From sequence record KY499642.1: a stretch of 64,000 nt of DNA. One strand, written 5' to 3'. The stretch's first letter is position 1. Every line of letters begins with the position of its first letter. The notes under the pieces were generated by a model, which worked only from the letters and a program-made list of their open reading frames with translations, did not search any database and had not been told where the DNA came from. Positions 31,273-48,233 of the stretch are shown piece after piece. A program made the translations under genes and the position numbers.

Positions 31273-31425
31273 ATGAAAACTCGTGAATTAGAGAAAGACG
31301 AATTCCCTGAGATTCCGGGAGTTACATTCACACGTGGTGTTGAATTTGAATTCGACATTGAATTTGACGAACCAAGTTGTAAGAGAATGCATGAAATCAA
31401 TGCCAACGACCACGTCGACAAATAA
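31273..31425 (+). CDS. 50 aa acidic hypothetical protein (below cutoff)
   Basis: MKTRELEKDEFPEIPGVTFTRGVEFEFDIEF...; AAGGA upstream; ends before terminator. Confidence 0.55.
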   Translation: MKTRELEKDEFPEIPGVTFTRGVEFEFDIEFDEPSCKRMHEINANDHVDK

Positions 31426-31429
31426 AAAC

Positions 31430-31467
31430 AAATAAAGAGAGAGGGCCTTAGCCCTCCTCTTTTTTTT
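31430..31467. terminator. bidirectional intrinsic terminator
   Basis: A-rich flank, GAGGGC-CTTA-GCCCTC, T-run; between convergent units. Confidence 0.85.
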
Positions 31468-31506
31468 GCCTTTACTTTATTTTTTTACACGTTTTCAAAC
31501 TAAAAG

Positions 31507-32139
31507 TTAAACGCGAGGAATTCCGTAACGGTCAAGGTAACCTGCAATCTCACGGATTACACGGATGTTCCAACCCCAGAAGTACTTCTCGTTCTTCTCT
31601 TGAGGCCGACGCAAGGTGATGTGTTTCATATAGTGCATACAGTCTGCGTTAGTCTGCGCTACTAAGAAAGCCATTGCATCATCACGACCACGCTTCTTAA
31701 TGAAAGCATCAATCGTACCTAGAGTCTTAGGACCCATCCAACCATCTGCGGTAATGTTTGGCCAGTAAGCCTGACGGTTGTTCAGACAGTTTAGCGTCTC
31801 TTGAACAGCCATGACAGGTTCATCTGCACCAGACTTCAAACCCCAACGGAACATGGTACGCGCTAATGAGCGTGAACGCTTACACACCTCGTCAAGGAAC
31901 ATCGGATGCCAGAACTCCATCTCATATAGCCAGAAGGCCATTTCTTGAGTGAGATCTTTCATCTGACCATTCCAACCAAACAGTGACTTCAGTTTAGATG
32001 TGTAACGGGTAGCCAGTCCAATGGTAATACCGTGGTTAGTTTCCTTACCTAAGTCGGTTGGGTCATTTACATAACCACCCTCGACATTAGTTTCACCACG
32101 GATACATTCCTTACGGAACTCTGCCAAAGTAGTTTCCAT
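31507..32139 (-). CDS. glycoside hydrolase family 108 lysozyme with PG-binding C-terminal domain (endolysin candidate)
   Basis: EGGYVNDPTDLGKETNHGIT; ITADGWMGPKTL; FFWGW-like YFWGW; GGAG SD before ATG 32139. Confidence 0.9.
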   Translation of the reverse strand: METTLAEFRKECIRGETNVEGGYVNDPTDLGKETNHGITIGLATRYTSKLKSLFGWNGQMKDLTQEMAFWLYEMEFWHPMFLDEVCKRSRSLARTMFRWGLKSGADEPVMAVQETLNCLNNRQAYWPNITADGWMGPKTLGTIDAFIKKRGRDDAMAFLVAQTNADCMHYMKHITLRRPQEKNEKYFWGWNIRVIREIAGYLDRYGIPRV

Positions 32140-32161
32140 TATTATCTCCAAACTTTCAGTG

Positions 32162-32590
32162 TTACGAACGCGGTAGGAACGCAGGTGCTTTCGGCCACAC
32201 TATACGTGCAGGGAAGCCACCTTGTTGAGGAACGTCCAGTAACTTCTCACGGTATGTGGTTAAAGCTTGCTGTTGTTCTTCAGTCAATGCATTCCAGCGA
32301 AGTGGGTTGCTAACATAGGTATCTAAGATGCCTAGAAGTGCGTCACGTGTTGCGCGCTGTCTGTCTGCATCAGATTTACCGTCAATTAACAATTCAGGAC
32401 GTTGACGTACATCGCGTACAAGATTATGCTTACGATCCCATACAGCAAACTCAGGATAAACATTATTCTGAATTTCCTCAGGAGTCCTGCTATTAATCTC
32501 CAACACTTCCAACCCTTCAGTAAATAACCCCTCTAGGGTTGTACCAATGTAGTTGACAGTGTTGTCAGGGTTAAGCAATACAATTGCCAT
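32162..32590 (-). CDS. tail fibre assembly chaperone
   Basis: RATRDALL...WNAL...YREKLLDVPQQGGFP..IVWPKAP. Confidence 0.85.
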   Translation of the reverse strand: MAIVLLNPDNTVNYIGTTLEGLFTEGLEVLEINSRTPEEIQNNVYPEFAVWDRKHNLVRDVRQRPELLIDGKSDADRQRATRDALLGILDTYVSNPLRWNALTEEQQQALTTYREKLLDVPQQGGFPARIVWPKAPAFLPRS

Positions 32591-32599
32591 ATTTTACTC

Positions 32600-33997
32600 C
32601 TACGAAATACCAATTGAACGGTAACGGAAACGCCAGCGACGGTCTTCGGTGTGGTTAGTGTGGTATGAGTACGCACCTACCATAACCGACCCATCTGGAC
32701 AAGTCCAATCAACTACTTGGTCAAAGCCGTTAACGTAACCCGTAATCTGAACACCACCCCATGAAATAGCGGGCTTGTTAGTCTTCAGGTTATTGACTTC
32801 TTGCTGTAGCGATTGAATTGAACTTGCGTGTGTATTTAGTGTTTGATCTTGAGTGGTGTTCTTCTCTTCGACCAAACGAACACGTTCCGTCAACTGCGAC
32901 ATACTCGTTGCAAATTGTTCATCCACAGTTTTCTGGCGTTGCAATTCAGCGTCATGTTCAGCGTCTTTTGCTTCCAGTTCTGCAATCTTAGAGTCATGCC
33001 CGTCGTTACGAGTTTTCTCTTTATTGATATCTTGGATGTTTTTATCAATCGCCGCTTGGAGTTCTTGGTCACGTTGTTTCAAGCCAGTGATTTCATTATT
33101 GATGTCGTTGATTTCATCATTAATGGTTTCGATAGCCGCGTTCACATCTGCAATGTTCAGGTGAACTCGTGACAAAGATTGCGCATTTTGGTTCAACTGT
33201 AGGTTGTTGTTGTTCAGCGCTTGAACTAAACCATCGATACGGTCATTGATATCAGAGATACCATTAACCAGTGAACGGAAGCGAGGTTCCAAGTCTCCCA
33301 GTGCCACATTCAGCACTTGAACGATTTGGTCGATACGTTCTTTATCGTAACAGTTGACTTGTTCCGCACTCACCTGATGTGGATTGTTTAAATCATCGAG
33401 GTGTTCTTGATGCAATGTGCGTAGAGTAGACTCTAACGCATCAATGCGTGCACGGACTTGTTCGAACTGAGCGTTGTCACCGATCATAAGAGTATCACGA
33501 ATGTGACCTAGCACGTCGATAAGGAACTCAAGACCGAAGATGTCACCGAAGTCGTGCATATGCGGAGTTGGCTGGAACAGGTCTGGCTTGTCGATGACGT
33601 TCTGCCAGTAAGTGTTCTTGTTGTTGATTTCAAGTGCATCGATAGCATCTTGGATGGCTTGTGCAGATTGTGCAAACGGGCCACCTACGATGTTAGCACT
33701 CACGGTAACGTCCGTAGAGACAGCAGTGTTATGTACTACGATAACGCCACAGATTTCTTTACCGGGTGTAAGCGCGGTCAAGTCCTCGTAGAAGAATACG
33801 CACTCGTAATCATCTCCACGCTTCAACAGTTTACCAGAGTTGCGCTCCCGGACAGCCAAGTCCTTGGTGTAGAACGGGCCATTCTTTAGCGCAAATGCAC
33901 GGTACTGCTGAGTGCCGAGTGTGTGGTTTTCTTCTACACGGTTTGATTCACGATCACCTCTTAAATCCAATGGATAGATGAACTTTTTCAAAGCCAT
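32600..33997 (-). CDS. short tail fibre: conserved N-terminal anchor, coiled coil, C-terminal dermatopontin-like repeat
   Basis: FIYPLD N-term shared with 3 paralogs; NNPH motif; heptad-rich middle; tip TGYVNGFD...CPDG...SYHTNHTEDRRWRF. Confidence 0.8.
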   Translation of the reverse strand: MALKKFIYPLDLRGDRESNRVEENHTLGTQQYRAFALKNGPFYTKDLAVRERNSGKLLKRGDDYECVFFYEDLTALTPGKEICGVIVVHNTAVSTDVTVSANIVGGPFAQSAQAIQDAIDALEINNKNTYWQNVIDKPDLFQPTPHMHDFGDIFGLEFLIDVLGHIRDTLMIGDNAQFEQVRARIDALESTLRTLHQEHLDDLNNPHQVSAEQVNCYDKERIDQIVQVLNVALGDLEPRFRSLVNGISDINDRIDGLVQALNNNNLQLNQNAQSLSRVHLNIADVNAAIETINDEINDINNEITGLKQRDQELQAAIDKNIQDINKEKTRNDGHDSKIAELEAKDAEHDAELQRQKTVDEQFATSMSQLTERVRLVEEKNTTQDQTLNTHASSIQSLQQEVNNLKTNKPAISWGGVQITGYVNGFDQVVDWTCPDGSVMVGAYSYHTNHTEDRRWRFRYRSIGIS

Positions 33998-34005
33998 GCT
34001 TGTTC

Positions 34006-34027
34006 ATGCGGGTGTTGCCACCCGCAT
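34006..34027 (-). promoter_or_regulatory. GNRA-capped 9 bp hairpin 8 nt upstream of fibre start codon
   Basis: ATGCGGGTG-GCAA-CACCCGCAT on - strand. Confidence 0.55.
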
Positions 34028-34041
34028 CCCTGTTTCAATGG

Positions 34042-34437
34042 TTAATCTTTAGCGTCTGGCGATTTAGGCCATACAACAGTATCCAGACTTGTGAAGTCCA
34101 TACCGTAAAGCTCAGCACGATATTTACGCCATGCTTGCAGCTTAGCCTCAGCTTCTTCAGACGGTGTAAATTCTACAACATCATTCAAAGTATCAATCTG
34201 AGTTTTAGCAGTTTCCATTTCGTAAACGTGCTTCTGCTTGGCTTCTTCCAGCAGTTCTTTTTCGGTGTAGACGATATCAACGATAATATCATTACCATTG
34301 TCATCTTTACCAAGTTGGATTTTGCTGATGTCAAGGGATTCATCAGATTGAAGCATGATGATGTTCTCAGGAACAACAGGCTCCATATCGATAGACCATT
34401 GACAACGGCCAGTTTCTTTGTTAAATCCGTAATACAT
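34042..34437 (-). CDS. tail fibre assembly protein (Tfa/Caudo_TAP-like)
   Basis: AKTQIDTLND...AKLQAWRKYRAEL...VVWPKSP; ATG 34437 abuts upstream stop. Confidence 0.85.
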   Translation of the reverse strand: MYYGFNKETGRCQWSIDMEPVVPENIIMLQSDESLDISKIQLGKDDNGNDIIVDIVYTEKELLEEAKQKHVYEMETAKTQIDTLNDVVEFTPSEEAEAKLQAWRKYRAELYGMDFTSLDTVVWPKSPDAKD

Positions 34438-34438
34438 T

Positions 34439-37400
34439 TTACACCTCTGGATTCTTACGAGCAATTAGATAGTAACGAGCATTACAGCCCAAGGGATTCG
34501 TGACAACTGAACCACCTGCTAGACGTATTGTGATATTACAAGTAAGTCCTGACAGTACCGCTTTCGCGTAGGTCAGTTTAGAAGTTGAAGAACTATGGTT
34601 GAATGAAACAACCGCGTGACAGTCAGCCGCCGTAAAGCCGATAGGGATTGGGAGTGTATGACCACCGCCAATAGTACCTGTAGCAAACGCAACTGCTTCT
34701 GCTTGACGCTCCGAGAGGATACGAATGGTATCCGCAGAAGCGTAGTAGTTACCAACGTTCTCATCTGGGCGCAGGATGTTGATAAAGGTTGAGTTAGGCT
34801 GAGACATACAGCCGTAACCGAACCGACCACCAGATTTGAACTGCTGTAGCTCCGTGAACTGCTGCAAATCAAACTCATGGACAACTTCGATGTGTTCTTT
34901 ACCATGGTCTTCTAGCTTCGTACTTTTAATGAAACGAGTTGCCGAAACCACGAACTTCTCACCTTTACGTACGGCAGTGATACGTGAGTAGTTACCGCCC
35001 CAACCGCCTGCATTAGCGCCAGTACCGCCACCAGTTTTGATAAGTTTACGAGACGGCAGATGGTAATCGTACCAAATGTCAAACTTACCGCTGATTGCCA
35101 TATGTCCTTCAATTGACTGTGCACGCACCGCACAGATTGTGTGCTCGATACCCTGAGCATCTTCAATGAAGGCTAGGATAACTGCAACCGCATCGTTATC
35201 CCCGTCAGGTGAACCGACCAATGTATCAAAAACGTAATCGCCTACTGGTGCAGGACTTACAAAGCCTACAAACGTGGCAGAGTTGATAGTACATTTGATT
35301 GTATCTGTCGCTTCTGTATACGTCCAACTTGATAACTCACCAGGGTTATGTGGTTGCGTGGCACTGTCCTTAAAGTGCGAAATACGCTCCCACGAATTGA
35401 ATACCTCTTTAAAGGTAGGCAATGTTAACGTGTGTATCATCCCCATGTTCTCAACTTTACCCAAACTGAATGAGTTCTTGTCAAGGTTGGTGATGTCATT
35501 GTGCGCCCGACGGTCGTAGATATGCTCCTCTAGTTCATAAATCATACCAAGGCGTGTAGCACGGTCAACCTTTAGTTCATTGATTTGTGTGTCGCCTGTG
35601 ATGGCATAACCAATGTACATGCTGGTTTCGGAGTCAGCTGTCTTAGTTAGACTAAACTTGTAGTTCGCAGTACCAACACCCTCATTATCGTACGTAACTT
35701 CCACGTAAATGTAGAAAGTCTTGTTTTGATAATTTGGGAACTCAGACATCTTCGATAAGTCGAAGTTCTGGATTGGTAGTTCTAAACTCTCACCCGCAAC
35801 GTAAAAACGTGCGGCCTCAGTAAAGTATACAACCCATCCAGAAGCTACCTGAGTAGCATGAATGATTTGCGATGATAGATAAGTATTACCGCTCATCTCT
35901 GCAACAGTTCTACCAAGTTTCTTAGCGGATACAACCTGCGCCGCATATTCGTTTACTGTATCAATTAGACCAATGTCTGGATGCCAGTAAGACGCATACA
36001 TTACGTGAGTGTGTGCATTTCGGTTTCGTTCATACAACACGGAACCGTCATCTTTATCCAAGACAATTTGGAAGATGCGACCACCTGAGTGACCTACATA
36101 ACTCACGTATAGCGAATGGTTCAAACAGTAGACTTTGTGACCATCGTCCGTAGTGCCACAAGTATTCATGCCAAACGACTCGAAACTACCCCAACCTACA
36201 ACTGAGTTATTCCAGTTAGGGTTAGAGATTAACTCGCCGATATTAACGCTTGCTACCGCAGCACCAGCCATGGTGATTGTACACTTGTGCGTTGCAGTGA
36301 ACACACGACGTGAAGACTTAGCAGCATCCGCCCAGAAGACATATGTGTACTGGATAAAACATACAAGTGTGTTAGCACCCTTTTCCCAATCGCCGAATGC
36401 GTGAAGCATCACGCGGTCTTCCCATAGCGACATACCGCCTGTGGCTGGATGTAACGCACGGAAACGAGTACGTAAGTCTGCTACTAATGCACTACTCCAA
36501 CTCACCGGACTCGTTGGGGTTTCATTCACGATTTTGGAATTATTCGTAGGGTATGTTGACGAAATCACGAAACCTTCGTTCTTATTCGTATCCCAGTTCA
36601 TCGGCACACGAATTAACCGTGCATTGTCACCATTTGGCAATAATCTTCGGTCAGAAGTTGGACCCCAACCTGTGCCGTCTTCTACATAACTCCCGTTCAA
36701 ATCGTAAGTACAAATTGTATCACGACCATCTAACTGATCACTTATCAACTTGTTACCCGGCAAGAAGCCCATGTATTTAGTACCAGCACCGACAACAGAA
36801 CCGTAGGCACCTTCAAAATCGGCGGCTGTAATAGTAACCGGGTTTGACTTACCAGCTTCCAAGTAATCAAAAACCGAAAGGTCAGTGCCAGACTTAAACT
36901 CATACACACGCGGAATGTACGTTGTTCCGTAGAAACGGAATGCAAACATTCTATCTCTCGTAACTAGCACAGGCGTGTTATTGTTCGGGTTAGCGCCAGT
37001 CCACGCCTCCGCAGGTGCAGATTTACCCGCAGGCATTTCCCAACGATTGTTATACAGCTTAATTGGGAAACAATCCGCATTATCAGACACCATTTGCATC
37101 GTATCTAAATCTAACACAAACGAATGTGATAGTGGGTAACCTGTCGAGCCATCCGAACGTGAGTAGTAGGTTCTACCGTAAACCTGCACGCGTAACTTAT
37201 TATCCTTAATATAGAACATTGAGTTTTGCGTTGAGTGTCGAACGTTGTTAGAGCCACTCCAGTGACCATTATCAAGACGATGGATGATTGGCTTATCACC
37301 ATCCAAGTTATTTGCCTGGCCGAGGGTAGTAAAGAAGAACGTTTCGGTGTCGTTCTGAGCATTACCCTTCCAGTCATCACCGTTTAGACCAACACGTTCT

Positions 37401-39589
37401 AACGTGATCGGTCGACCCGCTTCGATATCTGAAATCTTAGCTTTCCAGTGACGACTATAACAACCACCGTTACCAAAGTAATGAAAGTGGAAGTGAACTT
37501 CATTCTTGTACAAGAAGATAGAACAACCGTTACCCAATGGACAGCCATTTAAGTCAACAATTTCAGCACCTACGTGTTTAGACATATCCATAGTACTACG
37601 GGTCAGTACTAGGTAGTACTTGCCATTAATTGTAGACAATGGAAATACTGTCTCACTACCACGGTGCGTATGACTTACACGGTCGCCATCTTCAATAAAG
37701 TTTGGGCGGTATTCAGTTGTAGTCGTTACTGTTTTAGAGAACGTTCCATCCGTTTTAAACTCACCGTACCAGTAATATACACCTTTATTAGCATGGTCAG
37801 CACCGTTACGCAATAGTACCAAACGCCCATCTGCTTCAATACAGCCCACTGCCACACCAGAACCTGTACCAGCAGCACCATATGAACCCAACACTGGCAA
37901 CGGTAGATAACCAAATCCACCATATTGCATAATGTCAAATGGCAGCGACGGCATCTTACCACTCAGGTTACTCTCTGCAACCAACTGGCTCTGGTATGCA
38001 TCATTCAGCATTACTGGAGTAGCTGCAACATCGTCACGAGACGACTGTGTAGTCGTTAGCTTAGTCATACCGTATGTATCATGGTCAGCATAAGGGATGT
38101 TCGTGAAGTCCGAGTTAGGGTGTGAGTGCGCAGCATTTGCTTTTGCCGCTGCTGCTGATTTAAACGCATTACTCGCAGGCTTGTTTTCCGGAGCAGTGTC
38201 GTTCACATTACCCAGACCTAAGTCTGTTTTAGTAATGGTAATGTCTTGGTTTAGACGATGACCATTAATGGTGAATGTGTTGTCTACCTTTTCAGAGGCT
38301 AGCCTATTCAGGTTGTACAATGCACGTCCTGATGCTGCCATGTCTTTACTATCCGAGTAAATCGAATGATTAAGACGGAACACACCGTTAGTGGTTGATG
38401 TTGCTACAGGGTAGAACACGTAACCAGTTAGTGGCGAACCACTAAGACCACGACCAGCTAGATAAACAGTTTCAGTCGTCTCTACATGCAGAATTGTATC
38501 GACATAATCAGGCGGCGGCATGAAATCAGCAAGGTTGCCGACATGGATGAGGTAGAAGCCGTTATACACCGCTGTGTCGTCATTACCTGCATCCGAGTGT
38601 ACTGTTAACAGGTTATCTCCCGAACGGAGTGATGCAGTGATTTTATCATTACCACCACTTGCATCTGCTTCTAACACAATGTTACTGTTAGAGAGGATGT
38701 TCAAGTCACCATTAACAAGGTTAATCAGTGCTGAACCACCTTCGTTTTGAATGATGACGTTTGAACCATCGAAACGTAAACGACCTTCCAGTGTGTCGCC
38801 GATTAGACGGAACAGGTTATCTGTGTCTTCGGCATTTTCACCCAGTAGGTTAACCAACGTAACCAAATCGGCTAGGACGTAACCATACGCTTTCAATGAG
38901 TCTACTGCGGTATCATCACGATGTAGCGCGTTGAGCTGCGCCGCTGTAATGCGGTGACGACCACGTTTATCTTCGTGGTTATCCACGTCATGTGCATGGA
39001 TTTTGTTGGTTAAAGCAATCAGTGCGGCGATGACATCATCATACCCCTGCTTCTGAGCTTCGTTAAGACGCTCTAGAGCCTTTCTTACGCGGTCTAGGGC
39101 ACCAGTAGGTAAATCGTTAGCAATCGCTTCATCGATGTTTGCAGGCGCATCTACGGATGGGATAGCCATCTCGTAACGCATCACATCTTCCCAGTCTAAG
39201 TTACGTGGGTCACGCAAATCAACTTGGTTAAGATGGACATCAATAACACGCTTAAGCATGTTGTAGCGACCACCGAGAGTTCGGTACTGTACAAATTCAA
39301 TAGTGCCAGATAACGTTTGATCGATTATCATCACACTACCAAAAATCGGCATCTTGTTTTCTTCAGATGCTGCTTTGTAATAGTGACCGAGGTAGTAGTC
39401 AATACCCTCGTGAAGGGTGCGATCTTCCTCTACGTGACGTAGTGTGAGATCTTTGCGATAGAACGGCGCAAACAGAGGAATGATACATCCCCATTTATTA
39501 GGGTAGTCCTCAAGCTTGTGCTGTTCCCCTTTGACCAAACATAGAGGGTTAGTTCCCTCCGGGTCGTAAGGATAAGCGTAATCTGACAT
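34439..39589 (-). CDS. large tail/baseplate fibre protein (paralog 1) with TSP_C-like domain near C-terminus
   Basis: YAYPYDP N-term, LGLGNVND fibre motif, DGDNDAV...GGRFGYGCMSQ. Confidence 0.85.
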   Translation of the reverse strand: MSDYAYPYDPEGTNPLCLVKGEQHKLEDYPNKWGCIIPLFAPFYRKDLTLRHVEEDRTLHEGIDYYLGHYYKAASEENKMPIFGSVMIIDQTLSGTIEFVQYRTLGGRYNMLKRVIDVHLNQVDLRDPRNLDWEDVMRYEMAIPSVDAPANIDEAIANDLPTGALDRVRKALERLNEAQKQGYDDVIAALIALTNKIHAHDVDNHEDKRGRHRITAAQLNALHRDDTAVDSLKAYGYVLADLVTLVNLLGENAEDTDNLFRLIGDTLEGRLRFDGSNVIIQNEGGSALINLVNGDLNILSNSNIVLEADASGGNDKITASLRSGDNLLTVHSDAGNDDTAVYNGFYLIHVGNLADFMPPPDYVDTILHVETTETVYLAGRGLSGSPLTGYVFYPVATSTTNGVFRLNHSIYSDSKDMAASGRALYNLNRLASEKVDNTFTINGHRLNQDITITKTDLGLGNVNDTAPENKPASNAFKSAAAAKANAAHSHPNSDFTNIPYADHDTYGMTKLTTTQSSRDDVAATPVMLNDAYQSQLVAESNLSGKMPSLPFDIMQYGGFGYLPLPVLGSYGAAGTGSGVAVGCIEADGRLVLLRNGADHANKGVYYWYGEFKTDGTFSKTVTTTTEYRPNFIEDGDRVSHTHRGSETVFPLSTINGKYYLVLTRSTMDMSKHVGAEIVDLNGCPLGNGCSIFLYKNEVHFHFHYFGNGGCYSRHWKAKISDIEAGRPITLERVGLNGDDWKGNAQNDTETFFFTTLGQANNLDGDKPIIHRLDNGHWSGSNNVRHSTQNSMFYIKDNKLRVQVYGRTYYSRSDGSTGYPLSHSFVLDLDTMQMVSDNADCFPIKLYNNRWEMPAGKSAPAEAWTGANPNNNTPVLVTRDRMFAFRFYGTTYIPRVYEFKSGTDLSVFDYLEAGKSNPVTITAADFEGAYGSVVGAGTKYMGFLPGNKLISDQLDGRDTICTYDLNGSYVEDGTGWGPTSDRRLLPNGDNARLIRVPMNWDTNKNEGFVISSTYPTNNSKIVNETPTSPVSWSSALVADLRTRFRALHPATGGMSLWEDRVMLHAFGDWEKGANTLVCFIQYTYVFWADAAKSSRRVFTATHKCTITMAGAAVASVNIGELISNPNWNNSVVGWGSFESFGMNTCGTTDDGHKVYCLNHSLYVSYVGHSGGRIFQIVLDKDDGSVLYERNRNAHTHVMYASYWHPDIGLIDTVNEYAAQVVSAKKLGRTVAEMSGNTYLSSQIIHATQVASGWVVYFTEAARFYVAGESLELPIQNFDLSKMSEFPNYQNKTFYIYVEVTYDNEGVGTANYKFSLTKTADSETSMYIGYAITGDTQINELKVDRATRLGMIYELEEHIYDRRAHNDITNLDKNSFSLGKVENMGMIHTLTLPTFKEVFNSWERISHFKDSATQPHNPGELSSWTYTEATDTIKCTINSATFVGFVSPAPVGDYVFDTLVGSPDGDNDAVAVILAFIEDAQGIEHTICAVRAQSIEGHMAISGKFDIWYDYHLPSRKLIKTGGGTGANAGGWGGNYSRITAVRKGEKFVVSATRFIKSTKLEDHGKEHIEVVHEFDLQQFTELQQFKSGGRFGYGCMSQPNSTFINILRPDENVGNYYASADTIRILSERQAEAVAFATGTIGGGHTLPIPIGFTAADCHAVVSFNHSSSTSKLTYAKAVLSGLTCNITIRLAGGSVVTNPLGCNARYYLIARKNPEV

Positions 39590-39621
39590 CAGGTTAAACC
39601 TCTTATCTTTGTTATTCGAGA

Positions 39622-39659
39622 ATAATACAAAGGATGATCAACCGTTTGGCTAATCATCC
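39622..39659 (-). terminator. intrinsic terminator between fibre genes
   Basis: - strand GGATGATTAGCC-AAAC-GGTTGATCATCC then TTTGTATT. Confidence 0.65.
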
Positions 39660-39671
39660 CCTGCATTCATT

Positions 39672-42600
39672 TTAGACGTCCCTCAGACCTGCCAGCAGGT
39701 AGTTTACATAACCCGTCTTAGTGATTGGTGCAGACCCACCCTCTGACTCCGTCTTATACTGAGCTTCGACATACATGTAACGGTCGAGCGTTAGCATATC
39801 AATCCGTGATTCAGTGATGACGTTACCTGTAATGACTGAACGGATACGATGCTCAAGACCATCAATCGGGTCAGTATTTCCCTCAGTACCCATCGCATGC
39901 CAACCTAAGTAGACATTTACATAACGGCAGTTTGGAAGTAATGGTAGTTCTGCATTATTTACAGCCCCACCCTTGGCAATCAGTAAGTTAACGCCATCAC
40001 GTAGCGATTGGTATACACCTTTCGCGGTGATGTATTTCTTATCTTGACTACCTTCATCCGCAGCAATGCAATCAATGTATAACAACACTGAGTTAGCACT
40101 ACCCACCTCGGACGCCGGATACATGTTACCGCCAAACCCAATAACTCCAGAATCAATTGCTTTCTTAATGTTACCGTTGACATACCCTTTGTTGTTATCG
40201 CTACCTGTTGCCGTGTAATGCGTAATACGTTTACCTAATTGTTCCATACGAACGTCCATGTCGAAACTATCGTCACGGAAGTCTAAGTCAACACGAACGG
40301 TATCTATACGGGAAGTATAGACCAATGCGTCGTACTGATACTCAACAGCATAGTGGAAACCGTCAGCAGTTTCCCAGTATTCGAATATCATGTATAAACG
40401 ACCGTGTTGCGGCGCCACTTGCCAGTTACCGATATTAACGTGCGCTAGGTCTTGCTCAAACACACCGTTACGGTATTGACGTAGCCATACTTGTTTCTCG
40501 TTATAGAAACGGAACGAGTGTGCAAGTACGATATCAATAGTGTCACCAGCATCATCCACGTAAGAACCAAGAATAGCATGCCAGTTATTAACTGATTGCG
40601 TTCCCGTGTCGGCTCCCGGATTTAACACGTATCCCAACTTACGTTTACGTACGCCATTTTCAGGCTCATCGGACACATATGTAGGATCATTGAACTTCAT
40701 ACGTTGATTGCGGATTGCTAAGTACTGAGTACCTCCAGTCTTCCACGGGATAGTTACCATCACACCGTTACTGACCGGAATACCGTTATTGTCCAACGTA
40801 CGTGGTAGTGAAACAACGTTTTCGGCAGCCTCAACATCCCAACCTGTGAAGTAATCCCATTCATCGATACCGTTATGGCTGCCGTCTGAGATTTGACTCA
40901 CTACATCATAGTTGTGGATCAAGTCAAGACCAATCGTACCCGCATCACCTACAGCCCCGTCACCAATGTGCGCAGTTGGGTCATCCTCGTGCTCTTCAAG
41001 CTCACGGAACATACCGACTGAAGTAACTGAGTCAATATCTAGGATACCACTCACGTTGTCATCATAAATGTGATCGGATGTTCCTGTCTCCTGAGTCACG
41101 TTAGCGATTGCTGAAGCACCACACTTAATTGTGGAGATATGCAAACGACCCACTGCGTTAGTCAGCTTGTCTTTGCTAGCACTATAGAAGATGGAGTCGT
41201 CTTCCACATTAATGTAGATGTAGAACGTTTCATTAACGTAAGCATTCGGGAACAACGTTGCAAAGTTCAACGTGCCGCCCGGAACTGGCAAGTCTACACG
41301 TTCCGCATAGTTGATACGGTTCATGTACAACTCAGCATCCGCCGGGAACGTAATTGCCAGACCACTACAAGTAACGTCAGCAGTTGCACGCCAGTAACGA
41401 ACGTCCAAAACGTCAGCAGGCATCTTACCTTGAGAAGCTGTTGCCACTTCAACAATCTTCGATGCGTACTCACCCACCAATTTGGGTGTTATCGCCGCAT
41501 TCACATCAGAGTCAGACATACTTACAGCATGTCGGGTAACACCGAGCTCAGTACTCGTCGCTCTTTCCAATTCCACGCCAGTTAAGTCGTGTTTGTGGCT
41601 ACCTTCGGAGTATTGGTCAAGTAAACGCTGTTGCTCAGTCGAGATTGGCTTAGCTGCATCTGACGTGTTGTCTACCTTATCCAGATAAATGTCATCTTTA
41701 TCTAAACTGAAGTTACCCGACATTACATGACCGTTAATCACTCGCGCTTTAGGCACACGTCCGTCTAGGTCTTTACGCATGACATTAATCACGTAAGGCG
41801 TAGGCGCTTCTGTCAAATTGTTAGCAGTACGTGAGTTGGTTAACTTAACCGTGCCACGTTTAGACAATGTGGCAACTGGAAGTACCACACGCGCTTTAAG
41901 TGGCGTGTCAGGACGTGATGTTCCTTCCCATTTAATAGTGTCAGTGTCTTGCGTAACAACACGCATACCGACACCACCTTTCTCTCTTAGCTTCGCGCGT
42001 ACCGTACCTTGGTGAATCACCTCATGACCATTGTAACGTAACGTGTCTTTAGTACGTCCGTTACGACCACTTGAAACAATTTCCAGAATGTTTGCACCTG
42101 CCATGAACTTCATACGCTCACCGACAGTTTGTACATCACTGTCTGCCATGATGGCGAGAAGCTCATCTGCACTGATTGTGATATCGCCCGTTGATAGGTC
42201 AATTGACGTTGTACCACTTTCACTGCGGATAACCGCTTGGTTATTCTTCAGCGTTAGTCGGTCATCATAAACCTGATCACCAAACTTAGCCAAATACTTA
42301 CTGACGTCCGCTTCTGTAATACCACGGTTGTTAATGTAGTCAGCTAACTCCACTAACGTTTTGTTGAACGCACGGAACGTATCAACGGCTTGAGCGTTCT
42401 TTTCCAACGCATGGACTTGCGTTGCCGTAGTCTTATGAGGGTTCCCATAGTCCACGATATGCGTATCTTGACGATACTGGTTCAATAGGGCATCTACAGC
42501 GTTAACACGCGCTAGGAGGTCACCTACGGCCCCACTGTTGGCATTCTCGATTGCTTCATCGATTGCTGCTGCCAATCCATCAAGTTCTGCGGCCACGCCA

Positions 42601-43073
42601 TCTTTATTTACGAAGTCAGCGTAGTGCTGTTCGTGTTTAGCCGGAGTGAAATAAGCAGGTCTATCAATAACCTTTTCAAATGGCGTCTTGACAGGATCGT
42701 TCAATGCGTTTGCTAGATACGTCAGTACGTTACTGCGAATACCAACAAAGTTACCACCGACGGTTCGGTAGCCGACGATGAACTCACCTTTAAGTTGCGG
42801 GTTGATTAACACAATACAACCAAAGAGGTCACGCTGTGCAATCTTCTTAGCAGAGAGGACACGGTAACCTAGGTTATAGTCCTTTCCTTCTTTTAGTTCC
42901 AGACCGGACTCAGCATGTACAATGCTCAAGTTCTCAGTATAGAACGGTGCCATCTCAGGAACGATAACACGGTAAGTATTATCGTTAGTCAAGATAATGT
43001 GACTTTCATCCTGAATATGGCACTCATCCCTCGTACCCGCAGGGTCGTAGGGATAAGCGACCATAATCGTCAT
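39672..43073 (-). CDS. tail/baseplate fibre protein (paralog 2, shorter)
   Basis: VAYPYDP N-term, GNPH, YLDKVDN, TFYIY; lacks the long central region of paralogs 1 and 3. Confidence 0.85.
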   Translation of the reverse strand: MTIMVAYPYDPAGTRDECHIQDESHIILTNDNTYRVIVPEMAPFYTENLSIVHAESGLELKEGKDYNLGYRVLSAKKIAQRDLFGCIVLINPQLKGEFIVGYRTVGGNFVGIRSNVLTYLANALNDPVKTPFEKVIDRPAYFTPAKHEQHYADFVNKDGVAAELDGLAAAIDEAIENANSGAVGDLLARVNAVDALLNQYRQDTHIVDYGNPHKTTATQVHALEKNAQAVDTFRAFNKTLVELADYINNRGITEADVSKYLAKFGDQVYDDRLTLKNNQAVIRSESGTTSIDLSTGDITISADELLAIMADSDVQTVGERMKFMAGANILEIVSSGRNGRTKDTLRYNGHEVIHQGTVRAKLREKGGVGMRVVTQDTDTIKWEGTSRPDTPLKARVVLPVATLSKRGTVKLTNSRTANNLTEAPTPYVINVMRKDLDGRVPKARVINGHVMSGNFSLDKDDIYLDKVDNTSDAAKPISTEQQRLLDQYSEGSHKHDLTGVELERATSTELGVTRHAVSMSDSDVNAAITPKLVGEYASKIVEVATASQGKMPADVLDVRYWRATADVTCSGLAITFPADAELYMNRINYAERVDLPVPGGTLNFATLFPNAYVNETFYIYINVEDDSIFYSASKDKLTNAVGRLHISTIKCGASAIANVTQETGTSDHIYDDNVSGILDIDSVTSVGMFRELEEHEDDPTAHIGDGAVGDAGTIGLDLIHNYDVVSQISDGSHNGIDEWDYFTGWDVEAAENVVSLPRTLDNNGIPVSNGVMVTIPWKTGGTQYLAIRNQRMKFNDPTYVSDEPENGVRKRKLGYVLNPGADTGTQSVNNWHAILGSYVDDAGDTIDIVLAHSFRFYNEKQVWLRQYRNGVFEQDLAHVNIGNWQVAPQHGRLYMIFEYWETADGFHYAVEYQYDALVYTSRIDTVRVDLDFRDDSFDMDVRMEQLGKRITHYTATGSDNNKGYVNGNIKKAIDSGVIGFGGNMYPASEVGSANSVLLYIDCIAADEGSQDKKYITAKGVYQSLRDGVNLLIAKGGAVNNAELPLLPNCRYVNVYLGWHAMGTEGNTDPIDGLEHRIRSVITGNVITESRIDMLTLDRYMYVEAQYKTESEGGSAPITKTGYVNYLLAGLRDV

Positions 43074-43088
43074 GTTTCACCTCGTTAA

Positions 43089-46000
43089 TTAAATCATTCG
43101 CACGTCATTGAAGAACGTAATGTTGTATCGCAACAATGCAGTGTAGAAACCACCACGGTTATGACTCAGCGCAGTAAAGCGAATCACATCACCAACACGT
43201 TCATGCGATAGTGCCATAGTTGTAATACCGCCACCTGAATCCGAAGACTGGTCAATGTTGTACCACGCGTGATAGTTCATGTCTCGGTACTCCACGGGGA
43301 TTGGCACGTCGTACGTATCGGTGTCGCCACCGTTCACGGTCGGCGCAACTACACCGCTGATGGTTTTCAGACGGCTAGACCAACTGAAATTATCACGGTA
43401 CAGCTTCTGAGACGCGTAGAAGTTCTTACCATCTTCATCAGGACGCAAGATATTACGCCAAGTTGACGACGCTTGAGACTGCGCACAGTAGCCGAAACGT
43501 ACAGCACCGCGGAACAACGCAGCAAGCTCAGGGTGGTCTTTAACATCAAAGCTAAAGGTACGCTCTGTCGCCGCGTCAGTCATCATCTTAGTCACGTGGA
43601 TAGTGAACACATCACCACGACGTTTAACTGTAATGATACGTTCTGGGATTTCATCCCATCCGTGTTTCAAAGCAGTTGTATGTGAGTACAACGTTTTCTG
43701 GCCACGATTGGCGGTTTGGTTCCAGTTGTAATGTACTGAGAAGTGATCATTACGCGTATCTGTGCCCGAACACAGTGCTGTCAGCGTATGCTGAATCCCA
43801 TCCTTTTCCACCATGGCGAAGATAACACCGATCCAGTCATCATCACCGTTAGCTGAATTAACGCCAGTAATGAAATCATAGTCACCTACTGTAACGTCAG
43901 CAGGAGATACCATGCCAACGAAGCTAGAGCTGTTGGTTGTGTTAAAGATGGAGTCAGTTGCTGCGTTATACGACCACGTGGTTGTCTCCGCAGGGATTGC
44001 CGGGTACGGTTTCTCAGCTTGATGTGACAAACGGTACCAGCCATCGAATATCTCCTTAAAGGTTGGAACGACCAGTGAGTGACGAATGTCTTTGTTCTCA
44101 AGCAGACCTAAACCGATGTCATCGGTGGTTACCTGTGACAAATCCAAACCGTGTGGTTTAGGATCGGTTAAGTGCTCTGTGAACTCTCGGAAGTCGCCCA
44201 TACGTGTTGCACGGTTAACTTGCAAGTCGACAATCTTCTCATCCGTAGTACGACAGAAGCCAATGTAGATTTCTGTTGAACTGTCTGCCACATACTGCTC
44301 TTTAATCACGTAGTGCGCTACACCACCCTCAACCGACGCGTAGATGTAAAACGTGTTTGACTTATATGTGGACGGGAATAACGTCGACAAGTCTAACCCG
44401 GTTTCAGGGATCATGAATCGTGTACTGTTGATAAAGAACTGCACATCCTGAGTGAAGTATACTACCCAACCCTCAGCCACCTGTGAGGTGTGAAGCACCA
44501 CCGTTTCTTTGTACGAGTCCTTGTTAGCGTAGAACACTTTCCAATCCGCAGCCGTCTTACCAATATGACGTGCAGTAATCGCAGTAAAGGAGTTGTGCTG
44601 TAAAGGAATCACCAGACCGTAATCTTTGGTAATCATCATGCCACCTGCACGGTAGCTATACATGTCGGTGTTATGCATGTGTGCCGGATCAGGAGTTCCA
44701 GAACTATAATCGATTTCCACAAGGAATGACTTCGTGTGACTACCGTAATAGAAACTACAGTTTGTGTTCAACACAAACAACATCTTACCTGAGGCTTCAT
44801 CATCAATGATACCACTGTTAGGTAAGTAGTCTCGCGGCGATGAGTAAGACGCGTAACGACTTGCACCACCTGCTGACCCTAACGTACCACGGACACGGAA
44901 GTTACCAACACTGCCACTACGGGGAACGTTTTCAAGCGTACCCACTTTGTTTATACTACGAACAGCCCCATCCGATGCTTTAACGAAACGACCTACCGCA
45001 GTCCACATTGGCGGAATACGTTCATCTGGGAGGATATACACCACCACATCCACGCCTTGCAGCGTATCCGAACCTGCATCCGCTTCAAAGATAGGCTCAA
45101 GTGCCGCAGAGAGCGCATCCAGATGCTCGACTGTGGTTGAAATGCTACCGCTTGTATTGTGGCTCGCATCCATCGTGGTCCATGTAGATAAGCTTGCTTT
45201 ATGTAAAATACCACCGAAAGCAAGTTCAACATCCGACCCGTTAGTGAAGTAGACGTTATGGCGATACTTCCGCCAATCACCCGCATACTTACGGTCAACG
45301 TGTGGCCCGTAACCTTTCATGCCATTTGCAAATGTGTAATTAGGTACAAACTTACACATATTCCACCCGCTGTAACTATGCAAGTAGCGATTAGGTAGCA
45401 TAGCAACATGTCGTTGCATTACACCAACCGCACTACCAAAGTTACCAGTCAAACTAGGTCGAGAACCGATCGTCTGGATAGAACGGTTTGCTGCATGTAG
45501 TGAGTCGAAGTAATCTGCATTGTTATACTTCTGACCACCCGCACTCGGTGTAGATTCATTGTGAGTGTGCCACACCGCTGTAAATTTACCGTCACTAATT
45601 TCACCAGCACCAATATTACCACCATTCATCCAACCCATACTCTGGCTATTGTTCGCACCCATATTACCGCCGTAGTTATTACGACCATTAAACACATACG
45701 GGAGGTTTCGGCCTGAGTCAATAACCAACTGACGTGTGGCTAGGTTGACGGTTACACTGTACGACCAGTTATAGCGAGATGAGTCAAATGACGATGATTC
45801 ATAACTACCGACCTTAACAAAGATGCGAAGTAAATCACCTTTAATCGCCATCGCTAAACCGATGTTGTTCCAGCGCGGATTAATCGAGTAACGTGTATCT
45901 TTTCGAATACAGATAGCTTCTGCATTCTCATCATCACTCCAGTCATTACGGCAAAGTACAATGGTAGAACCCGACTGCTGCTCATTAAAGAAGTCAGTAC

Positions 46001-48233
46001 CTGAGATAACAACCTCTTCAAAGTTAGCCACACCGAATTCATCAAAGTCAGAAAGTGGTGCACGATAGAACGCATGTCGGATACCGTAACCATTACCAAC
46101 CCATGTGCCAATGTAATACACATAGTTGCCAAAGATAATAGGCGTTGGATCAGCGACACCTAGATTGTCAGGTAACAAGGCCACTTTATGGTTTTCACCA
46201 TTACCTGAGTTATTAAAGATAACAACCCCAGGGTGCTGATTACCCGCAGCATCTTTTAGACGAACATACATCCCATCACGAGAACCGCGCAGACAGTACA
46301 GAACTTCCCACCCTTCCGGCAAGGTGCCCGGACGATAACGCGTTGCCGTGGCAACGTAGTCAGTAATACTACCATCGCTTAGGAACGTAGCGTACGCGTA
46401 GAAGATACCTTGAGTAACTAAGTCATAACCGTTACGGTAGAAGATACATTTACCATCCTCTTCTACAAAGCCTGCCATCTGGCGTGCCGACTGGTAGTGA
46501 CCAGAACCTTCATACGAGCCTTGGACTGGAATAGGCAGCCAGTGGTTACCGCCATATTGAGTGATGTCAATTACATCATCGGGTAGGCGCGTACTAGTTA
46601 CAAACTCCAAGTCCATTACTTCGGTGTTCAAGTCCGACAGTTTAGCCGCAGAGAAACCGCGGTCAGTTGCACTTGACGTAGGATCATCACTTAAGAACGT
46701 GATACCATAGGTAGCCTCAGTAGCACGCGCAAAGCCCATTTCCGCAAAGGAGTGCGTGTGGTCACCCACTGCTTTATTCGCCAGTAGGTTCTCATGGTTC
46801 TGATTGACAGGCATATCCATATCGCTCAGGTTATCCACGTTACCTAAACCAAACTTGTCCTTAGTAAGGGTAATGTCGCGGTCAAGTCGAATGCCATTGA
46901 TTTTAACCGTGTCTGGAACCTTGGCTTTAATCTTAGCATCTACTTTAGCAGTGCCTTGACTTAACGCCACCTTAGTAGGTTGGTCTTTGGTTTCATCAAC
47001 AGTACCTACGGCAATACCAGAAACCGATGTTGTTGCGTCATCAAGTGTTGCGTCAGCCTTTAACGGATTACCTGCGACACCCTTACCTGAGAAATTCAGC
47101 GAAACACTGTCCTTAGTTTGGATATCGATGATGTGAGTGCCTGCGTCTGGCACATGCGCTTCTAAGTTACCGTCATGAATGATGGTCTTGTCATTGATAC
47201 GCAAGTCATCATCCGTTTGAGTCGCACCACGCGACGTTACAGTTAGTTCTACATCGCCAGAACGTAAGGTCGCCTTAGCACCCGGACTGTTCTTGTCTCT
47301 ATCAGCATGAACCAACGCATCAGAGATAGCGTCGAAACCAATGTTACCATTCGACATGTTAATACGCAGATACGCATTGTTTGAATGTAAGAACTCGATG
47401 AACATCAGACCGTCTTTCAGTACGATATCGCCTACTACAGTGTTACCGCCACTACGCTTAACGTAGTTATCCAAGTCAGCTTGAGTGATACCACGAGAGT
47501 TCACATAGTCAGCCAATTGGTTGATGGTCATGCCAGCGACTTTAGCCGTGTCTTTAGCGATACCTGCTTCATGCAGCGCTTGTGACTCGAACCATACTTC
47601 CCCGTGAGGGTTATTGAAGTTGTCTTGATGTGTCTTTAGAGGAGACTCATCCACAACCTTTTTCAGTTGCAGGAACCAATCATCCAACAGCATGTACATG
47701 TCGTTAGTCGTTTGGTCTTTGTTACGAACCACATCTGCGATTTCACGAATTGCAGTTTGAACGTTCTCTTCATCTACGAAGGTATCGCGGTCGAACTGTA
47801 GGTCAACTGGTGGGAACACAGGATCGTCATTAATGACTTCTTCCCATGTTGCGTGTTGTGGGTCAGTTTGACGATTTGTTAGGTAGTCGTCAATGATTGA
47901 ACGTTGGACAGGGAACTTACCGCCAAGTGTGCGATATTTAACTGTTACCGTTCCTGAAAGTTTCGGGTTGACAATCCAGATACCGCTATACATCAACTTA
48001 CCAGTACGCTCAATACCAGTAAAGTATTTATGCGATAGGTAGTAGTCAACACCCATGAGCAACGGTTTGTTGTTGCACTTAACTTCAATCTCCAAGTCTT
48101 CAAAGAACGGAGCGAAGTTAGGGATGATGACACGGTACGGGGACATTGTCGCACTTAGCACATGCGCTTCGTCACGTACGATGTTGTCATCGTTAGCAGC
48201 ATGTGGGTCAAACGCATACGCAAACTGTGGCAT
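43089..48233 (-). CDS. large tail/baseplate fibre protein (paralog 3) with TSP_C-like domain near C-terminus
   Basis: FAYAFDP N-term, NNPH, FGLGNVDN, NGDDDWIGVIF...VRFGYCAQSQ. Confidence 0.85.
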   Translation of the reverse strand: MPQFAYAFDPHAANDDNIVRDEAHVLSATMSPYRVIIPNFAPFFEDLEIEVKCNNKPLLMGVDYYLSHKYFTGIERTGKLMYSGIWIVNPKLSGTVTVKYRTLGGKFPVQRSIIDDYLTNRQTDPQHATWEEVINDDPVFPPVDLQFDRDTFVDEENVQTAIREIADVVRNKDQTTNDMYMLLDDWFLQLKKVVDESPLKTHQDNFNNPHGEVWFESQALHEAGIAKDTAKVAGMTINQLADYVNSRGITQADLDNYVKRSGGNTVVGDIVLKDGLMFIEFLHSNNAYLRINMSNGNIGFDAISDALVHADRDKNSPGAKATLRSGDVELTVTSRGATQTDDDLRINDKTIIHDGNLEAHVPDAGTHIIDIQTKDSVSLNFSGKGVAGNPLKADATLDDATTSVSGIAVGTVDETKDQPTKVALSQGTAKVDAKIKAKVPDTVKINGIRLDRDITLTKDKFGLGNVDNLSDMDMPVNQNHENLLANKAVGDHTHSFAEMGFARATEATYGITFLSDDPTSSATDRGFSAAKLSDLNTEVMDLEFVTSTRLPDDVIDITQYGGNHWLPIPVQGSYEGSGHYQSARQMAGFVEEDGKCIFYRNGYDLVTQGIFYAYATFLSDGSITDYVATATRYRPGTLPEGWEVLYCLRGSRDGMYVRLKDAAGNQHPGVVIFNNSGNGENHKVALLPDNLGVADPTPIIFGNYVYYIGTWVGNGYGIRHAFYRAPLSDFDEFGVANFEEVVISGTDFFNEQQSGSTIVLCRNDWSDDENAEAICIRKDTRYSINPRWNNIGLAMAIKGDLLRIFVKVGSYESSSFDSSRYNWSYSVTVNLATRQLVIDSGRNLPYVFNGRNNYGGNMGANNSQSMGWMNGGNIGAGEISDGKFTAVWHTHNESTPSAGGQKYNNADYFDSLHAANRSIQTIGSRPSLTGNFGSAVGVMQRHVAMLPNRYLHSYSGWNMCKFVPNYTFANGMKGYGPHVDRKYAGDWRKYRHNVYFTNGSDVELAFGGILHKASLSTWTTMDASHNTSGSISTTVEHLDALSAALEPIFEADAGSDTLQGVDVVVYILPDERIPPMWTAVGRFVKASDGAVRSINKVGTLENVPRSGSVGNFRVRGTLGSAGGASRYASYSSPRDYLPNSGIIDDEASGKMLFVLNTNCSFYYGSHTKSFLVEIDYSSGTPDPAHMHNTDMYSYRAGGMMITKDYGLVIPLQHNSFTAITARHIGKTAADWKVFYANKDSYKETVVLHTSQVAEGWVVYFTQDVQFFINSTRFMIPETGLDLSTLFPSTYKSNTFYIYASVEGGVAHYVIKEQYVADSSTEIYIGFCRTTDEKIVDLQVNRATRMGDFREFTEHLTDPKPHGLDLSQVTTDDIGLGLLENKDIRHSLVVPTFKEIFDGWYRLSHQAEKPYPAIPAETTTWSYNAATDSIFNTTNSSSFVGMVSPADVTVGDYDFITGVNSANGDDDWIGVIFAMVEKDGIQHTLTALCSGTDTRNDHFSVHYNWNQTANRGQKTLYSHTTALKHGWDEIPERIITVKRRGDVFTIHVTKMMTDAATERTFSFDVKDHPELAALFRGAVRFGYCAQSQASSTWRNILRPDEDGKNFYASQKLYRDNFSWSSRLKTISGVVAPTVNGGDTDTYDVPIPVEYRDMNYHAWYNIDQSSDSGGGITTMALSHERVGDVIRFTALSHNRGGFYTALLRYNITFFNDVRMI

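Follow-up and report, generated by a model that had tools for sequence, protein, structure and literature searches.

The stretch analysed here, a window of 64,000 nucleotides, belongs to the genome of Vibrio phage pVa-21 (KY499642.1, 231,998 bp; record position = window position + 62,000), a phiKZ-like jumbo phage with V. alginolyticus as its isolation host (PMC6472347). The fibre gene under study, pVa21_121, lies on the minus strand at 32600..33997 as an intact open reading frame (ORF) including its stop codon, and encodes a protein of 465 aa (gp121) annotated as 'minor tail protein'. gp121 matched PHROG 2163 'virion structural protein' (E 2.8e-93) as well as tail fibre PHROGs. Three parts could be delimited in it, all on the minus strand: an N-terminal anchor domain (residues 1-218, 33344..33997), an alpha-helical heptad (coiled-coil) shaft (residues 219-406, 32780..33343, from the predicted helix and the hydrophobic periodicity) and, at the extreme C-terminus, a single dermatopontin-type (DERM) repeat (residues 417-464, 32606..32749, with the bounds given by a profile hidden Markov model, HMM). 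Nine bases downstream of the fibre gene starts pVa21_120 (32162..32590, minus strand), which codes for a tail fibre assembly chaperone of 142 aa recognised by Phage_tail_APC (PF16778, 47.8 bits).

Judged by its sequence, the tip of the pVa-21 fibre is a true DERM, or amoebocyte-aggregation-factor, repeat. A sequence-only reading of the window had already placed a dermatopontin-family repeat at 32600-32760 from a 45-residue peptide, and both the assignment and the coordinates were borne out. The peptide corresponds to gp121 residues 418-462 (32612..32746), and is followed by Gly-Ile-Ser and the stop codon. The Pfam DERM profile (PF14704, curated cut-off 28.3 bits), which that reading had named as a check, gave 38.1 bits (E 2.3e-9) with the whole of gp121 and 42.5 bits (E 1e-10) with its last 66 aa, and gp121 aligned to positions 107-146 of the 152 of the profile, which represent the third repeat. 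An HMM of the repeat scored 108-109 bits on the pVa-21 tip, and when the tip was compared by BLASTP with a hagfish 'hemagglutinin/amebocyte aggregation factor-like' protein, the three repeats of the latter aligned with identities of 56%, 35% and 38% (E 1e-15, 4e-13 and 2e-7, respectively). In 614 cellular repeats the hallmark columns were occupied by N (95%), D (90%), S (96%), H (91%), N (82%), E (87%), D (99%) and R (99%), with Gly in a further column (77%); the pVa-21 tip has all the non-cysteine hallmark columns, including the Gly and the aromatic residue after E-D-R. It is the sole DERM repeat in the window. A repeat unit of just 48 residues could lead one to suppose that the likeness is due to chance or to convergence on a short motif, the tip being a generic fibre end. 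However, the score above the curated cut-off, the pairwise E value of 1e-15 to an animal member, the presence of all the hallmark columns and eight further phage tips that pass or approach PF14704 (33.1, 35.6, 39.9 and 40.9 bits) leave this explanation with practically no probability, and we consider it refuted by the Pfam score, the hallmark columns and the alignment to the hagfish protein.

Phage and cellular repeats differ in their cysteines. Columns 45 and 46, which contain Cys in 75% and 51% of the cellular repeats, are Tyr and Arg in the pVa-21 tip; they were Tyr and Lys/Arg in the six phage tips scored (6/6), and the same was seen in the remaining phage tips. The Cys of column 19 is retained only in the pVa-21 group, being the lone Cys of the pVa-21 repeat, and is lost in the other phage lineages. 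The lack of paired cysteines in the phage tips would suit folding in the bacterial cytoplasm.

The anchor domain of gp121 is common to three larger paralogous fibre proteins of pVa-21. It was 28% identical to the N-terminus of the 1133-aa one (E 1e-18), and PHROGs 2163, 13857 and 23008 matched the N-termini of all four fibre-like proteins. No hydrophobic leader or signal peptide was found at the N-terminus of gp121, which consists of this phage fibre anchor domain. The N-terminal two thirds of gp121 (anchor and proximal shaft) are kept in 219 jumbo-phage records, where the protein is often annotated as 'virion structural protein' and once as 'viral fiber protein'; none of the matches from these records extended into the DERM tip, besides pVa-21 itself. 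In the literature on the SPN3US homologue gp167 we found nothing useful.

Residues 219-406 formed a single helix of 188 residues in the AlphaFold2 (AF2) model, with block-mean values of the predicted local distance difference test (pLDDT) of 75-91 over approximately residues 281-390. The whole of gp121, modelled as a monomer, had a mean pLDDT of 54, and this model served for helix boundaries only. The shaft showed a marked hydrophobic periodicity at 3.5 residues (power 20.9 versus 0.76 +/- 0.72, with 0/2000 shuffles reaching it). Compared with three full-length relatives, pVa-21 was 88-91% identical in the anchor and ~70% identical in the proximal shaft; identity fell to 37-45% over the distal shaft and rose again to 78-84% over the tip. 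Because the tip is so much better kept than the distal shaft, it must be under a constraint of its own.

The C-terminal part of pVa21_120 is a generic Phage_tail_APC domain, and its N-terminal half is common to the chaperones encoded behind other DERM tips. The protein was 30% identical (E 8e-13) to the chaperone of a T4-like locus described below, and an alignment of the chaperones of five loci (A7) contained 13 invariant columns, of which the N-terminal half holds 11. This half showed no similarity to the second chaperone of the window (34042..34464). Scanning IMG/VR with the chaperone alignment yielded six loci, in all of which the upstream ORF ended in a single DERM repeat (6/6), and chaperone homologues came directly after every examined DERM tip having downstream sequence. 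Tfa chaperones bind the fibre tip through a variable N-terminal domain, and trimerisation is driven by their conserved C-terminal domain (PMC9608196); the arrangement of pVa21_120, with a tip-specific N-terminal half and a generic C-terminal half, fits these published chaperones.

Comparison by blastn with a close relative, Vibrio phage pVp-JHP1101, gave 92.5% identity over 31417-32152 (through the endolysin) and 79% over 32950-36000, and no match between 32153 and 32949. The fibre of pVp-JHP1101 is 87% identical to gp121 over residues 1-353 and unrelated beyond, and no chaperone gene is present at the site equivalent to pVa21_120. Because the homology breaks at 32153..32949 (minus strand) alone, the distal shaft, the DERM tip and the chaperone constitute one exchangeable unit, which is the only stretch without DNA homology to pVp-JHP1101. 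The isolation host is V. parahaemolyticus for pVp-JHP1101 and V. alginolyticus for pVa-21. The GC content of the cassette (0.452, against 0.444 for the window) gave no signal with respect to its flanks. An endolysin gene with GH108 and PG_binding_3 domains (31507-32151, minus strand) lies directly downstream of the fibre-chaperone pair.

Fibres with the same tip were sought by scanning IMG/VR and JGI metagenomes for sequence patterns. When the tip and the chaperone were used in word-based protein searches, only close relatives came up, and the wider set came from an exhaustive profile search together with these scans. Single-repeat DERM tips were found at the extreme C-terminus of four fibre scaffolds, namely the pVa-21-type jumbo phage fibre, the fibre in the T4 gp12 slot, that in the P2 gpH slot and one unclassified fibre, and on each of the four a chaperone gene of 133-152 aa stands directly behind the tip. 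On the T4-like contig the order was gp10, gp11, the DERM-tipped fibre (gp12 slot), a 140-aa gene, fibritin and gp13; the fibre matched PHROG 910 over residues 1-358 and DERM with 33.1 bits. The P2-like modules, present on three contigs, had the order V, J, I, H-type fibre, a 133-aa gene in the G slot and sheath, with an H-type fibre of 327 aa that combined a Phage_tail_fib N-terminus and a DERM repeat (40.9 bits). The unclassified fibre, of 393 aa, ended in a DERM repeat (35.6 bits) and was followed by a 145-aa APC chaperone (64 bits). Two more pVa-21-type DERM fibres were located, on contigs of 225.7 kb and 98 kb, and in both cases the fibre gene is followed by the chaperone and the GH108 endolysin. 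The former (L005) is a pVa-21-like, near genome-length jumbo contig (JAANSS014211311.1, 225,723 bp) in a very large assembly (GCA_024449935.1), and the same fibre is encoded on another contig, of 224,039 bp; the order fibre, chaperone, GH108 is kept in loci L005 and L027. The C-termini of T4 gp12 and P2 gpH are receptor-binding ends, and in the fibres of these two slots the DERM tip takes the place of the C-terminal part. The presence of a DERM tip in these two slots, together with a dedicated fibre chaperone, points to a bacterial surface as the probable target of the tip.

To place the tip within its family, a profile was built from an alignment (A1) of the pVa-21 tip, the tip of one relative and the three repeats of a bacterial relative. 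In a set of 1.84 billion representatives it recovered 1,546 proteins (E <= 0.001), of which the best 150 were inspected; the hagfish protein, which owes its name to UniRef, is one of those recovered. The number of repeats per chain followed a simple rule: among 157 family proteins it was three in 97, six in 36, nine in two and one in six. Thus, 135 of the 151 non-fibre proteins had 3, 6 or 9 repeats, and the single-repeat proteins were phage fibres in 6/6 cases; this list is the top of a score-ranked table, so that weaker single-repeat cellular proteins may exist, and one from Myxococcota was indeed found by another route. The PF14704 model itself spans three repeats in its 152 positions, and bacterial proteins matched positions 1-150 with 123-170 bits. 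An AF2 model of a natural three-repeat DERM domain was a compact single body of 3 x 4 strands (pLDDT 94.3, predicted template modelling score 0.89). Each single repeat that we found sits behind a part that trimerises (coiled coil, phage fibre shaft or collagen helix). The supposition, made in the sequence-only reading, that a homotrimeric fibre would supply three copies of one repeat fits the repeat numbers, the compact three-repeat model and the trimerising stalks.

The search for structural relatives was made with the tip and with the three-repeat DERM model. By sequence (phmmer), the best match of the tip in the PDB had an E value of 0.039 and was the APC-beta domain of PLP1, and a full bacterial DERM protein had none at E <= 1; by fold (Foldseek), the three-repeat model had no PDB match at E <= 0.001, the top one being again PLP1 APC-beta (E 0.076, template modelling (TM) score 0.21). 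Because neither sequence nor fold gave a significant PDB match, no solved relative of DERM was detected. The tip aligned at E 0.04-0.1 to each of the three CP-x-G-containing repeats in the C-terminal domain of Toxoplasma PLP1 (5ouo and 6d7a). In BFVD the monomer model of a 465-aa viral protein superposed on one repeat of the DERM model with 2.0 A over 58 columns; we take this entry to be the pVa-21 fibre, given the same length and 41% identity over the tip. Beyond it, the BFVD fold search returned giant-virus entries and one Podoviridae protein with 11-16% identity and TM scores of 0.4-0.6. Several viral proteins were matched at E 5e-5 to 1e-3 (12-15% identity), and weaker matches included Ostreococcus virus OtV5 (E 2.3e-3) and a Tupanvirus ricin-B lectin (E 0.018). 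On the basis of these models, a threefold beta fold of the DERM kind may be widespread in giant viruses.

Contrary to its framing in the sequence-only reading, the domain is not restricted to animals. A genome scan found full three-repeat DERM domains among housekeeping genes in two Bacteriovoracaceae genomes (Bdellovibrionota). For one of the two, Pfam DERM gave 155-170 bits over profile positions 1-150, and for a similar metagenomic protein (P0002) 123 bits. A repeat of P0002 was the closest complete cellular repeat to the pVa-21 tip (60% identity), eukaryotic repeats reaching 53-56%. A Myxococcota metagenome-assembled genome (CAUJFU010000408.1, L009:1870-3144, plus strand) encodes a secreted protein of 424 aa in which a collagen triple helix (Pfam Collagen, 90 bits) is followed by one DERM repeat (49.9 bits) that keeps its cysteines. 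The Bacteriovoracaceae-type DERM proteins (L008:2362-3507, L007:2071-3153 and L003:3891-5021) have a prepilin-like N-terminus with Gln where pilins have Glu5, and in two of the three (L008 and L003) a small overlapping ORF of 130-136 aa precedes the DERM gene. When this leader was examined with NCBIfam, sub-threshold N-terminal matches to GspJ/ComGE were obtained and one member lay exactly at the TIGR02532 cut-off, so that the N-terminus is weakly pilin-like and we do not call it a pilin. These proteins may be adhesins of predatory bacteria. A short metagenome contig (L011:53-1552, plus strand) encodes a eukaryote-looking protein of 499 aa with three DERM repeats, two cysteine-rich N-terminal repeats and a lysine-rich linker.

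A neighbour-joining tree of 46 columns of the repeat recovered the phage tips as one group in 32/200 bootstraps and the jumbo group in 38/200. The phylogeny that the sequence-only reading had called for was thus carried out and did not unite the phage tips, and the direction of transfer, which that reading had called unknown, is not settled by it. A recent capture of the repeat from an animal genome could be proposed, since eukaryotic repeats are 53-56% identical to the pVa-21 tip and up to 63% identical to some phage tip. Nevertheless, the pVa-21 tip is at least as similar to a bacterial repeat (60%), the cassette matches the window in GC content, the repeat tree is unresolved, and the tip is already established on four fibre scaffolds with a co-evolved chaperone and with the cysteines lost in all of them. 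We consider such a capture extremely unlikely.

Taken together, we infer, with reasonable although by no means full confidence, that the three chains of the fibre together restore a disulfide-free DERM domain, with which the phage would bind a receptor on the bacterial surface; the trimer, the binding and the ligand all belong to this interpretation. In cellular proteins the folding unit is three DERM repeats in one chain, whereas the phage provides one repeat per fibre chain, placed behind a heptad coiled coil of ~190 residues, and three fibre chains would rebuild the three-repeat domain around a true threefold axis. Such a trimeric reconstitution is the simplest reading because every single repeat found follows something that trimerises. 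The Tfa-type chaperone pVa21_120 would aid folding and trimerisation and keep the three ends in register, its N-terminal half being specific for the tip and its C-terminal half acting as a generic trimerising module. The rebuilt domain would form the distal end of one of four paralogous fibres and most likely bind a structure on the surface of the Vibrio host, probably lipopolysaccharide (LPS), capsule or another carbohydrate, adding in this way to host specificity. Tip and chaperone travel as a cassette between unrelated fibre scaffolds. Binding to the host surface is suggested because the tip occupies the gp12 and gpH position, because the cassette is exchanged between phages from different hosts and because named family members are agglutinins (Fujii et al. 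1992, as cited in PMC5685644).

Several observations weigh against this interpretation. A small C-terminal beta domain behind a coiled coil could act solely as a trimerisation cap, and the three far larger paralogous fibres of pVa-21 could be the main receptor binders. The tip had a pLDDT of only 30-45 in the monomer model, which may merely reflect an alignment of four sequences. The difference in host between pVa-21 and pVp-JHP1101 is a correlation, and their other fibre genes differ too. Finally, a single origin of the phage tips does not emerge from the neighbour-joining tree of the repeat (32/200 bootstraps). With regard to the cap, the single DERM repeat could serve for trimerisation and registration as the foldon of T4 fibritin does, with no receptor-binding role; the long heptad coiled coil followed by a C-terminal beta unit of ~48 residues resembles fibritin, and the strong conservation of the tip among relatives is what a folding nucleus would show. 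However, gp121 had no fibritin match in PHROG or Pfam, fibres in the gp12 and gpH slots, whose C-termini are the receptor-binding ends in T4 and P2, terminate in this tip as well, the tip needs its own chaperone and is the part exchanged between relatives from different Vibrio hosts, and cellular members of the family are named agglutinins. A role restricted to that of a cap is therefore unlikely in our opinion, and the cap and receptor-binding roles may coexist.

Another possibility is that the tip binds animal mucus, extracellular matrix or haemocytes and holds the phage on the surfaces of marine animals, as the sequence-only reading had contemplated. Animal matrix proteins and agglutinins are the best-known members of the family, and the host is a pathogen of aquatic animals (PMC6472347). 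Nonetheless, the domain is also present in free-living predatory-type bacteria and in Myxococcota, the metagenomic loci have no link to animals in the present data, and the tip is found at canonical receptor-binding positions of three other fibre types, including those of T4 gp12 and P2 gpH, with a dedicated fibre chaperone. To our knowledge, the phage mucus-adherence domains described so far decorate capsids and not fibre ends. Binding to animal material is accordingly a highly unlikely function for this tip, and recognition of the bacterial surface by a rebuilt DERM trimer is the interpretation that we prefer.

The three larger fibre-like genes of the window (1716, 1133 and 1714 aa) occupy 34439..48233 on the minus strand and share the N-terminal anchor domain of gp121. 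The 1716-aa and 1714-aa proteins are paralogous over their full length (28% identity, E 1e-153), and one of the three genes is labelled 'putative membrane protein' in GenBank; the PHROG matches were to virion and tail fibre families. These similarities suggest the presence of four paralogous fibres in pVa-21. A second fibre chaperone, Caudo_TAP (PF02413, 47.6 bits), is encoded at 34042..34464 on the minus strand and would serve the 1716-aa fibre; its ORF overlaps the 3'-end of the 1716-aa gene by 26 bases, with the ORFs as listed.

Our literature search found no paper linking dermatopontin or PF14704 with phage fibres, and the papers on pVa-21 (PMC6472347) and pVa-22 discuss fibre divergence and host range and do not discuss the DERM domain, although automatic Pfam annotation already flags gp121 as DERM. 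A fibre tip with its chaperone is a known kind of module, and the DERM type of tip appears to be undescribed. It adds a compact, disulfide-free and chaperone-dependent tip of ~48 residues, putatively receptor-binding, that is common to jumbo, T4-like and P2-like phages. It also provides a clear and testable rule for how the DERM fold is built, that is, three repeats per chain or one behind a trimer stalk. On a broader level, we tentatively suggest, as an idea that is possible and still rather doubtful, that DERM is a surface-recognition module shared by phage fibres, adhesin-like proteins of predatory bacteria and innate-immune agglutinins of animals, all of which attack Gram-negative cells or defend against them. 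As part of this idea, the phage form would carry one third of the domain per chain, with a true homotrimer in place of the pseudo-threefold single chain, and would be a living example of the route of domain evolution from homo-oligomer to tandem repeat; animals may have acquired DERM from a bacterial or phage pool, and the phage trimer would offer a first experimental access to the dermatopontin fold, which is still unsolved. That DERM, commonly seen as a matrix or agglutinin module of animals, is also bacterial and viral changes the way in which candidate gene transfers involving it are read, and choanoflagellate dermatopontin genes have been listed as such candidates (PMC7971027).

Among known structures, the threefold beta-prism and trefoil proteins (APC-beta of Toxoplasma PLP1, jacalin-type lectins and ricin-B) resemble the DERM model in that the latter also has 3 x 4 strands. 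PLP1 APC-beta was the best PDB match in both sequence and fold, neither of them significant (E 0.039; Foldseek E 0.076, TM 0.21), and jacalin-type lectins and the Tupanvirus ricin-B protein were among the weak fold matches. T4 fibritin has in common with gp121 a coiled-coil shaft that ends in a small C-terminal beta unit, whereas the pVa-21 tip has no sequence relation to it, is larger, has a separate chaperone and is exchanged as a cassette. The true fibritin of the T4-like locus (L006) was detected at E 8.5e-90 and gp121 had no fibritin match. Assembly of a domain from one piece per chain on a stalk has counterparts, by analogy only, in the collagen-stalked C1q/TNF-type heads and in the Ralstonia fucose lectin propeller. 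Lectins such as the Ralstonia protein may be built from several repeats in one chain or from several chains with one repeat each. Within the DERM family, the Myxococcota collagen-DERM protein would follow the same logic of one piece per chain on a trimerising stalk.

Some animal members of the DERM family are matrix proteins, agglutinins or, in fire coral, a cytolysin; this allows no conclusion on the activity of the phage tip. The pVa-21 repeat resembles the family in its above-threshold score, in all the non-cysteine hallmarks and in its 53-56% identity to animal and other eukaryotic repeats. It differs in its number (one per chain instead of 3, 6 or 9), in the loss of the paired cysteines, in the lack of a signal peptide, in its fusion to a phage fibre shaft and in being accompanied by a chaperone gene. 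The DERM proteins of Bacteriovoracaceae (~360-380 aa with three C-terminal repeats) contain the repeat closest to the pVa-21 tip (60%) and have an architecture suggestive of surface display, in bacteria that attack other Gram-negative cells; in contrast to the phage fibre, they have three repeats per chain, keep the cysteines and lie in chromosomal housekeeping neighbourhoods. The closest parallels in organisation are the fibre-chaperone pairs gpH-gpG of P2, S-U of Mu and gp24-gp25 of Pam3. With these the pVa-21 pair shares a conserved anchor, a shaft and an exchangeable C-terminal tip, as well as an adjoining downstream chaperone with a tip-specific N-terminal and a generic C-terminal domain, and it differs from them in bearing a tip of the DERM type.

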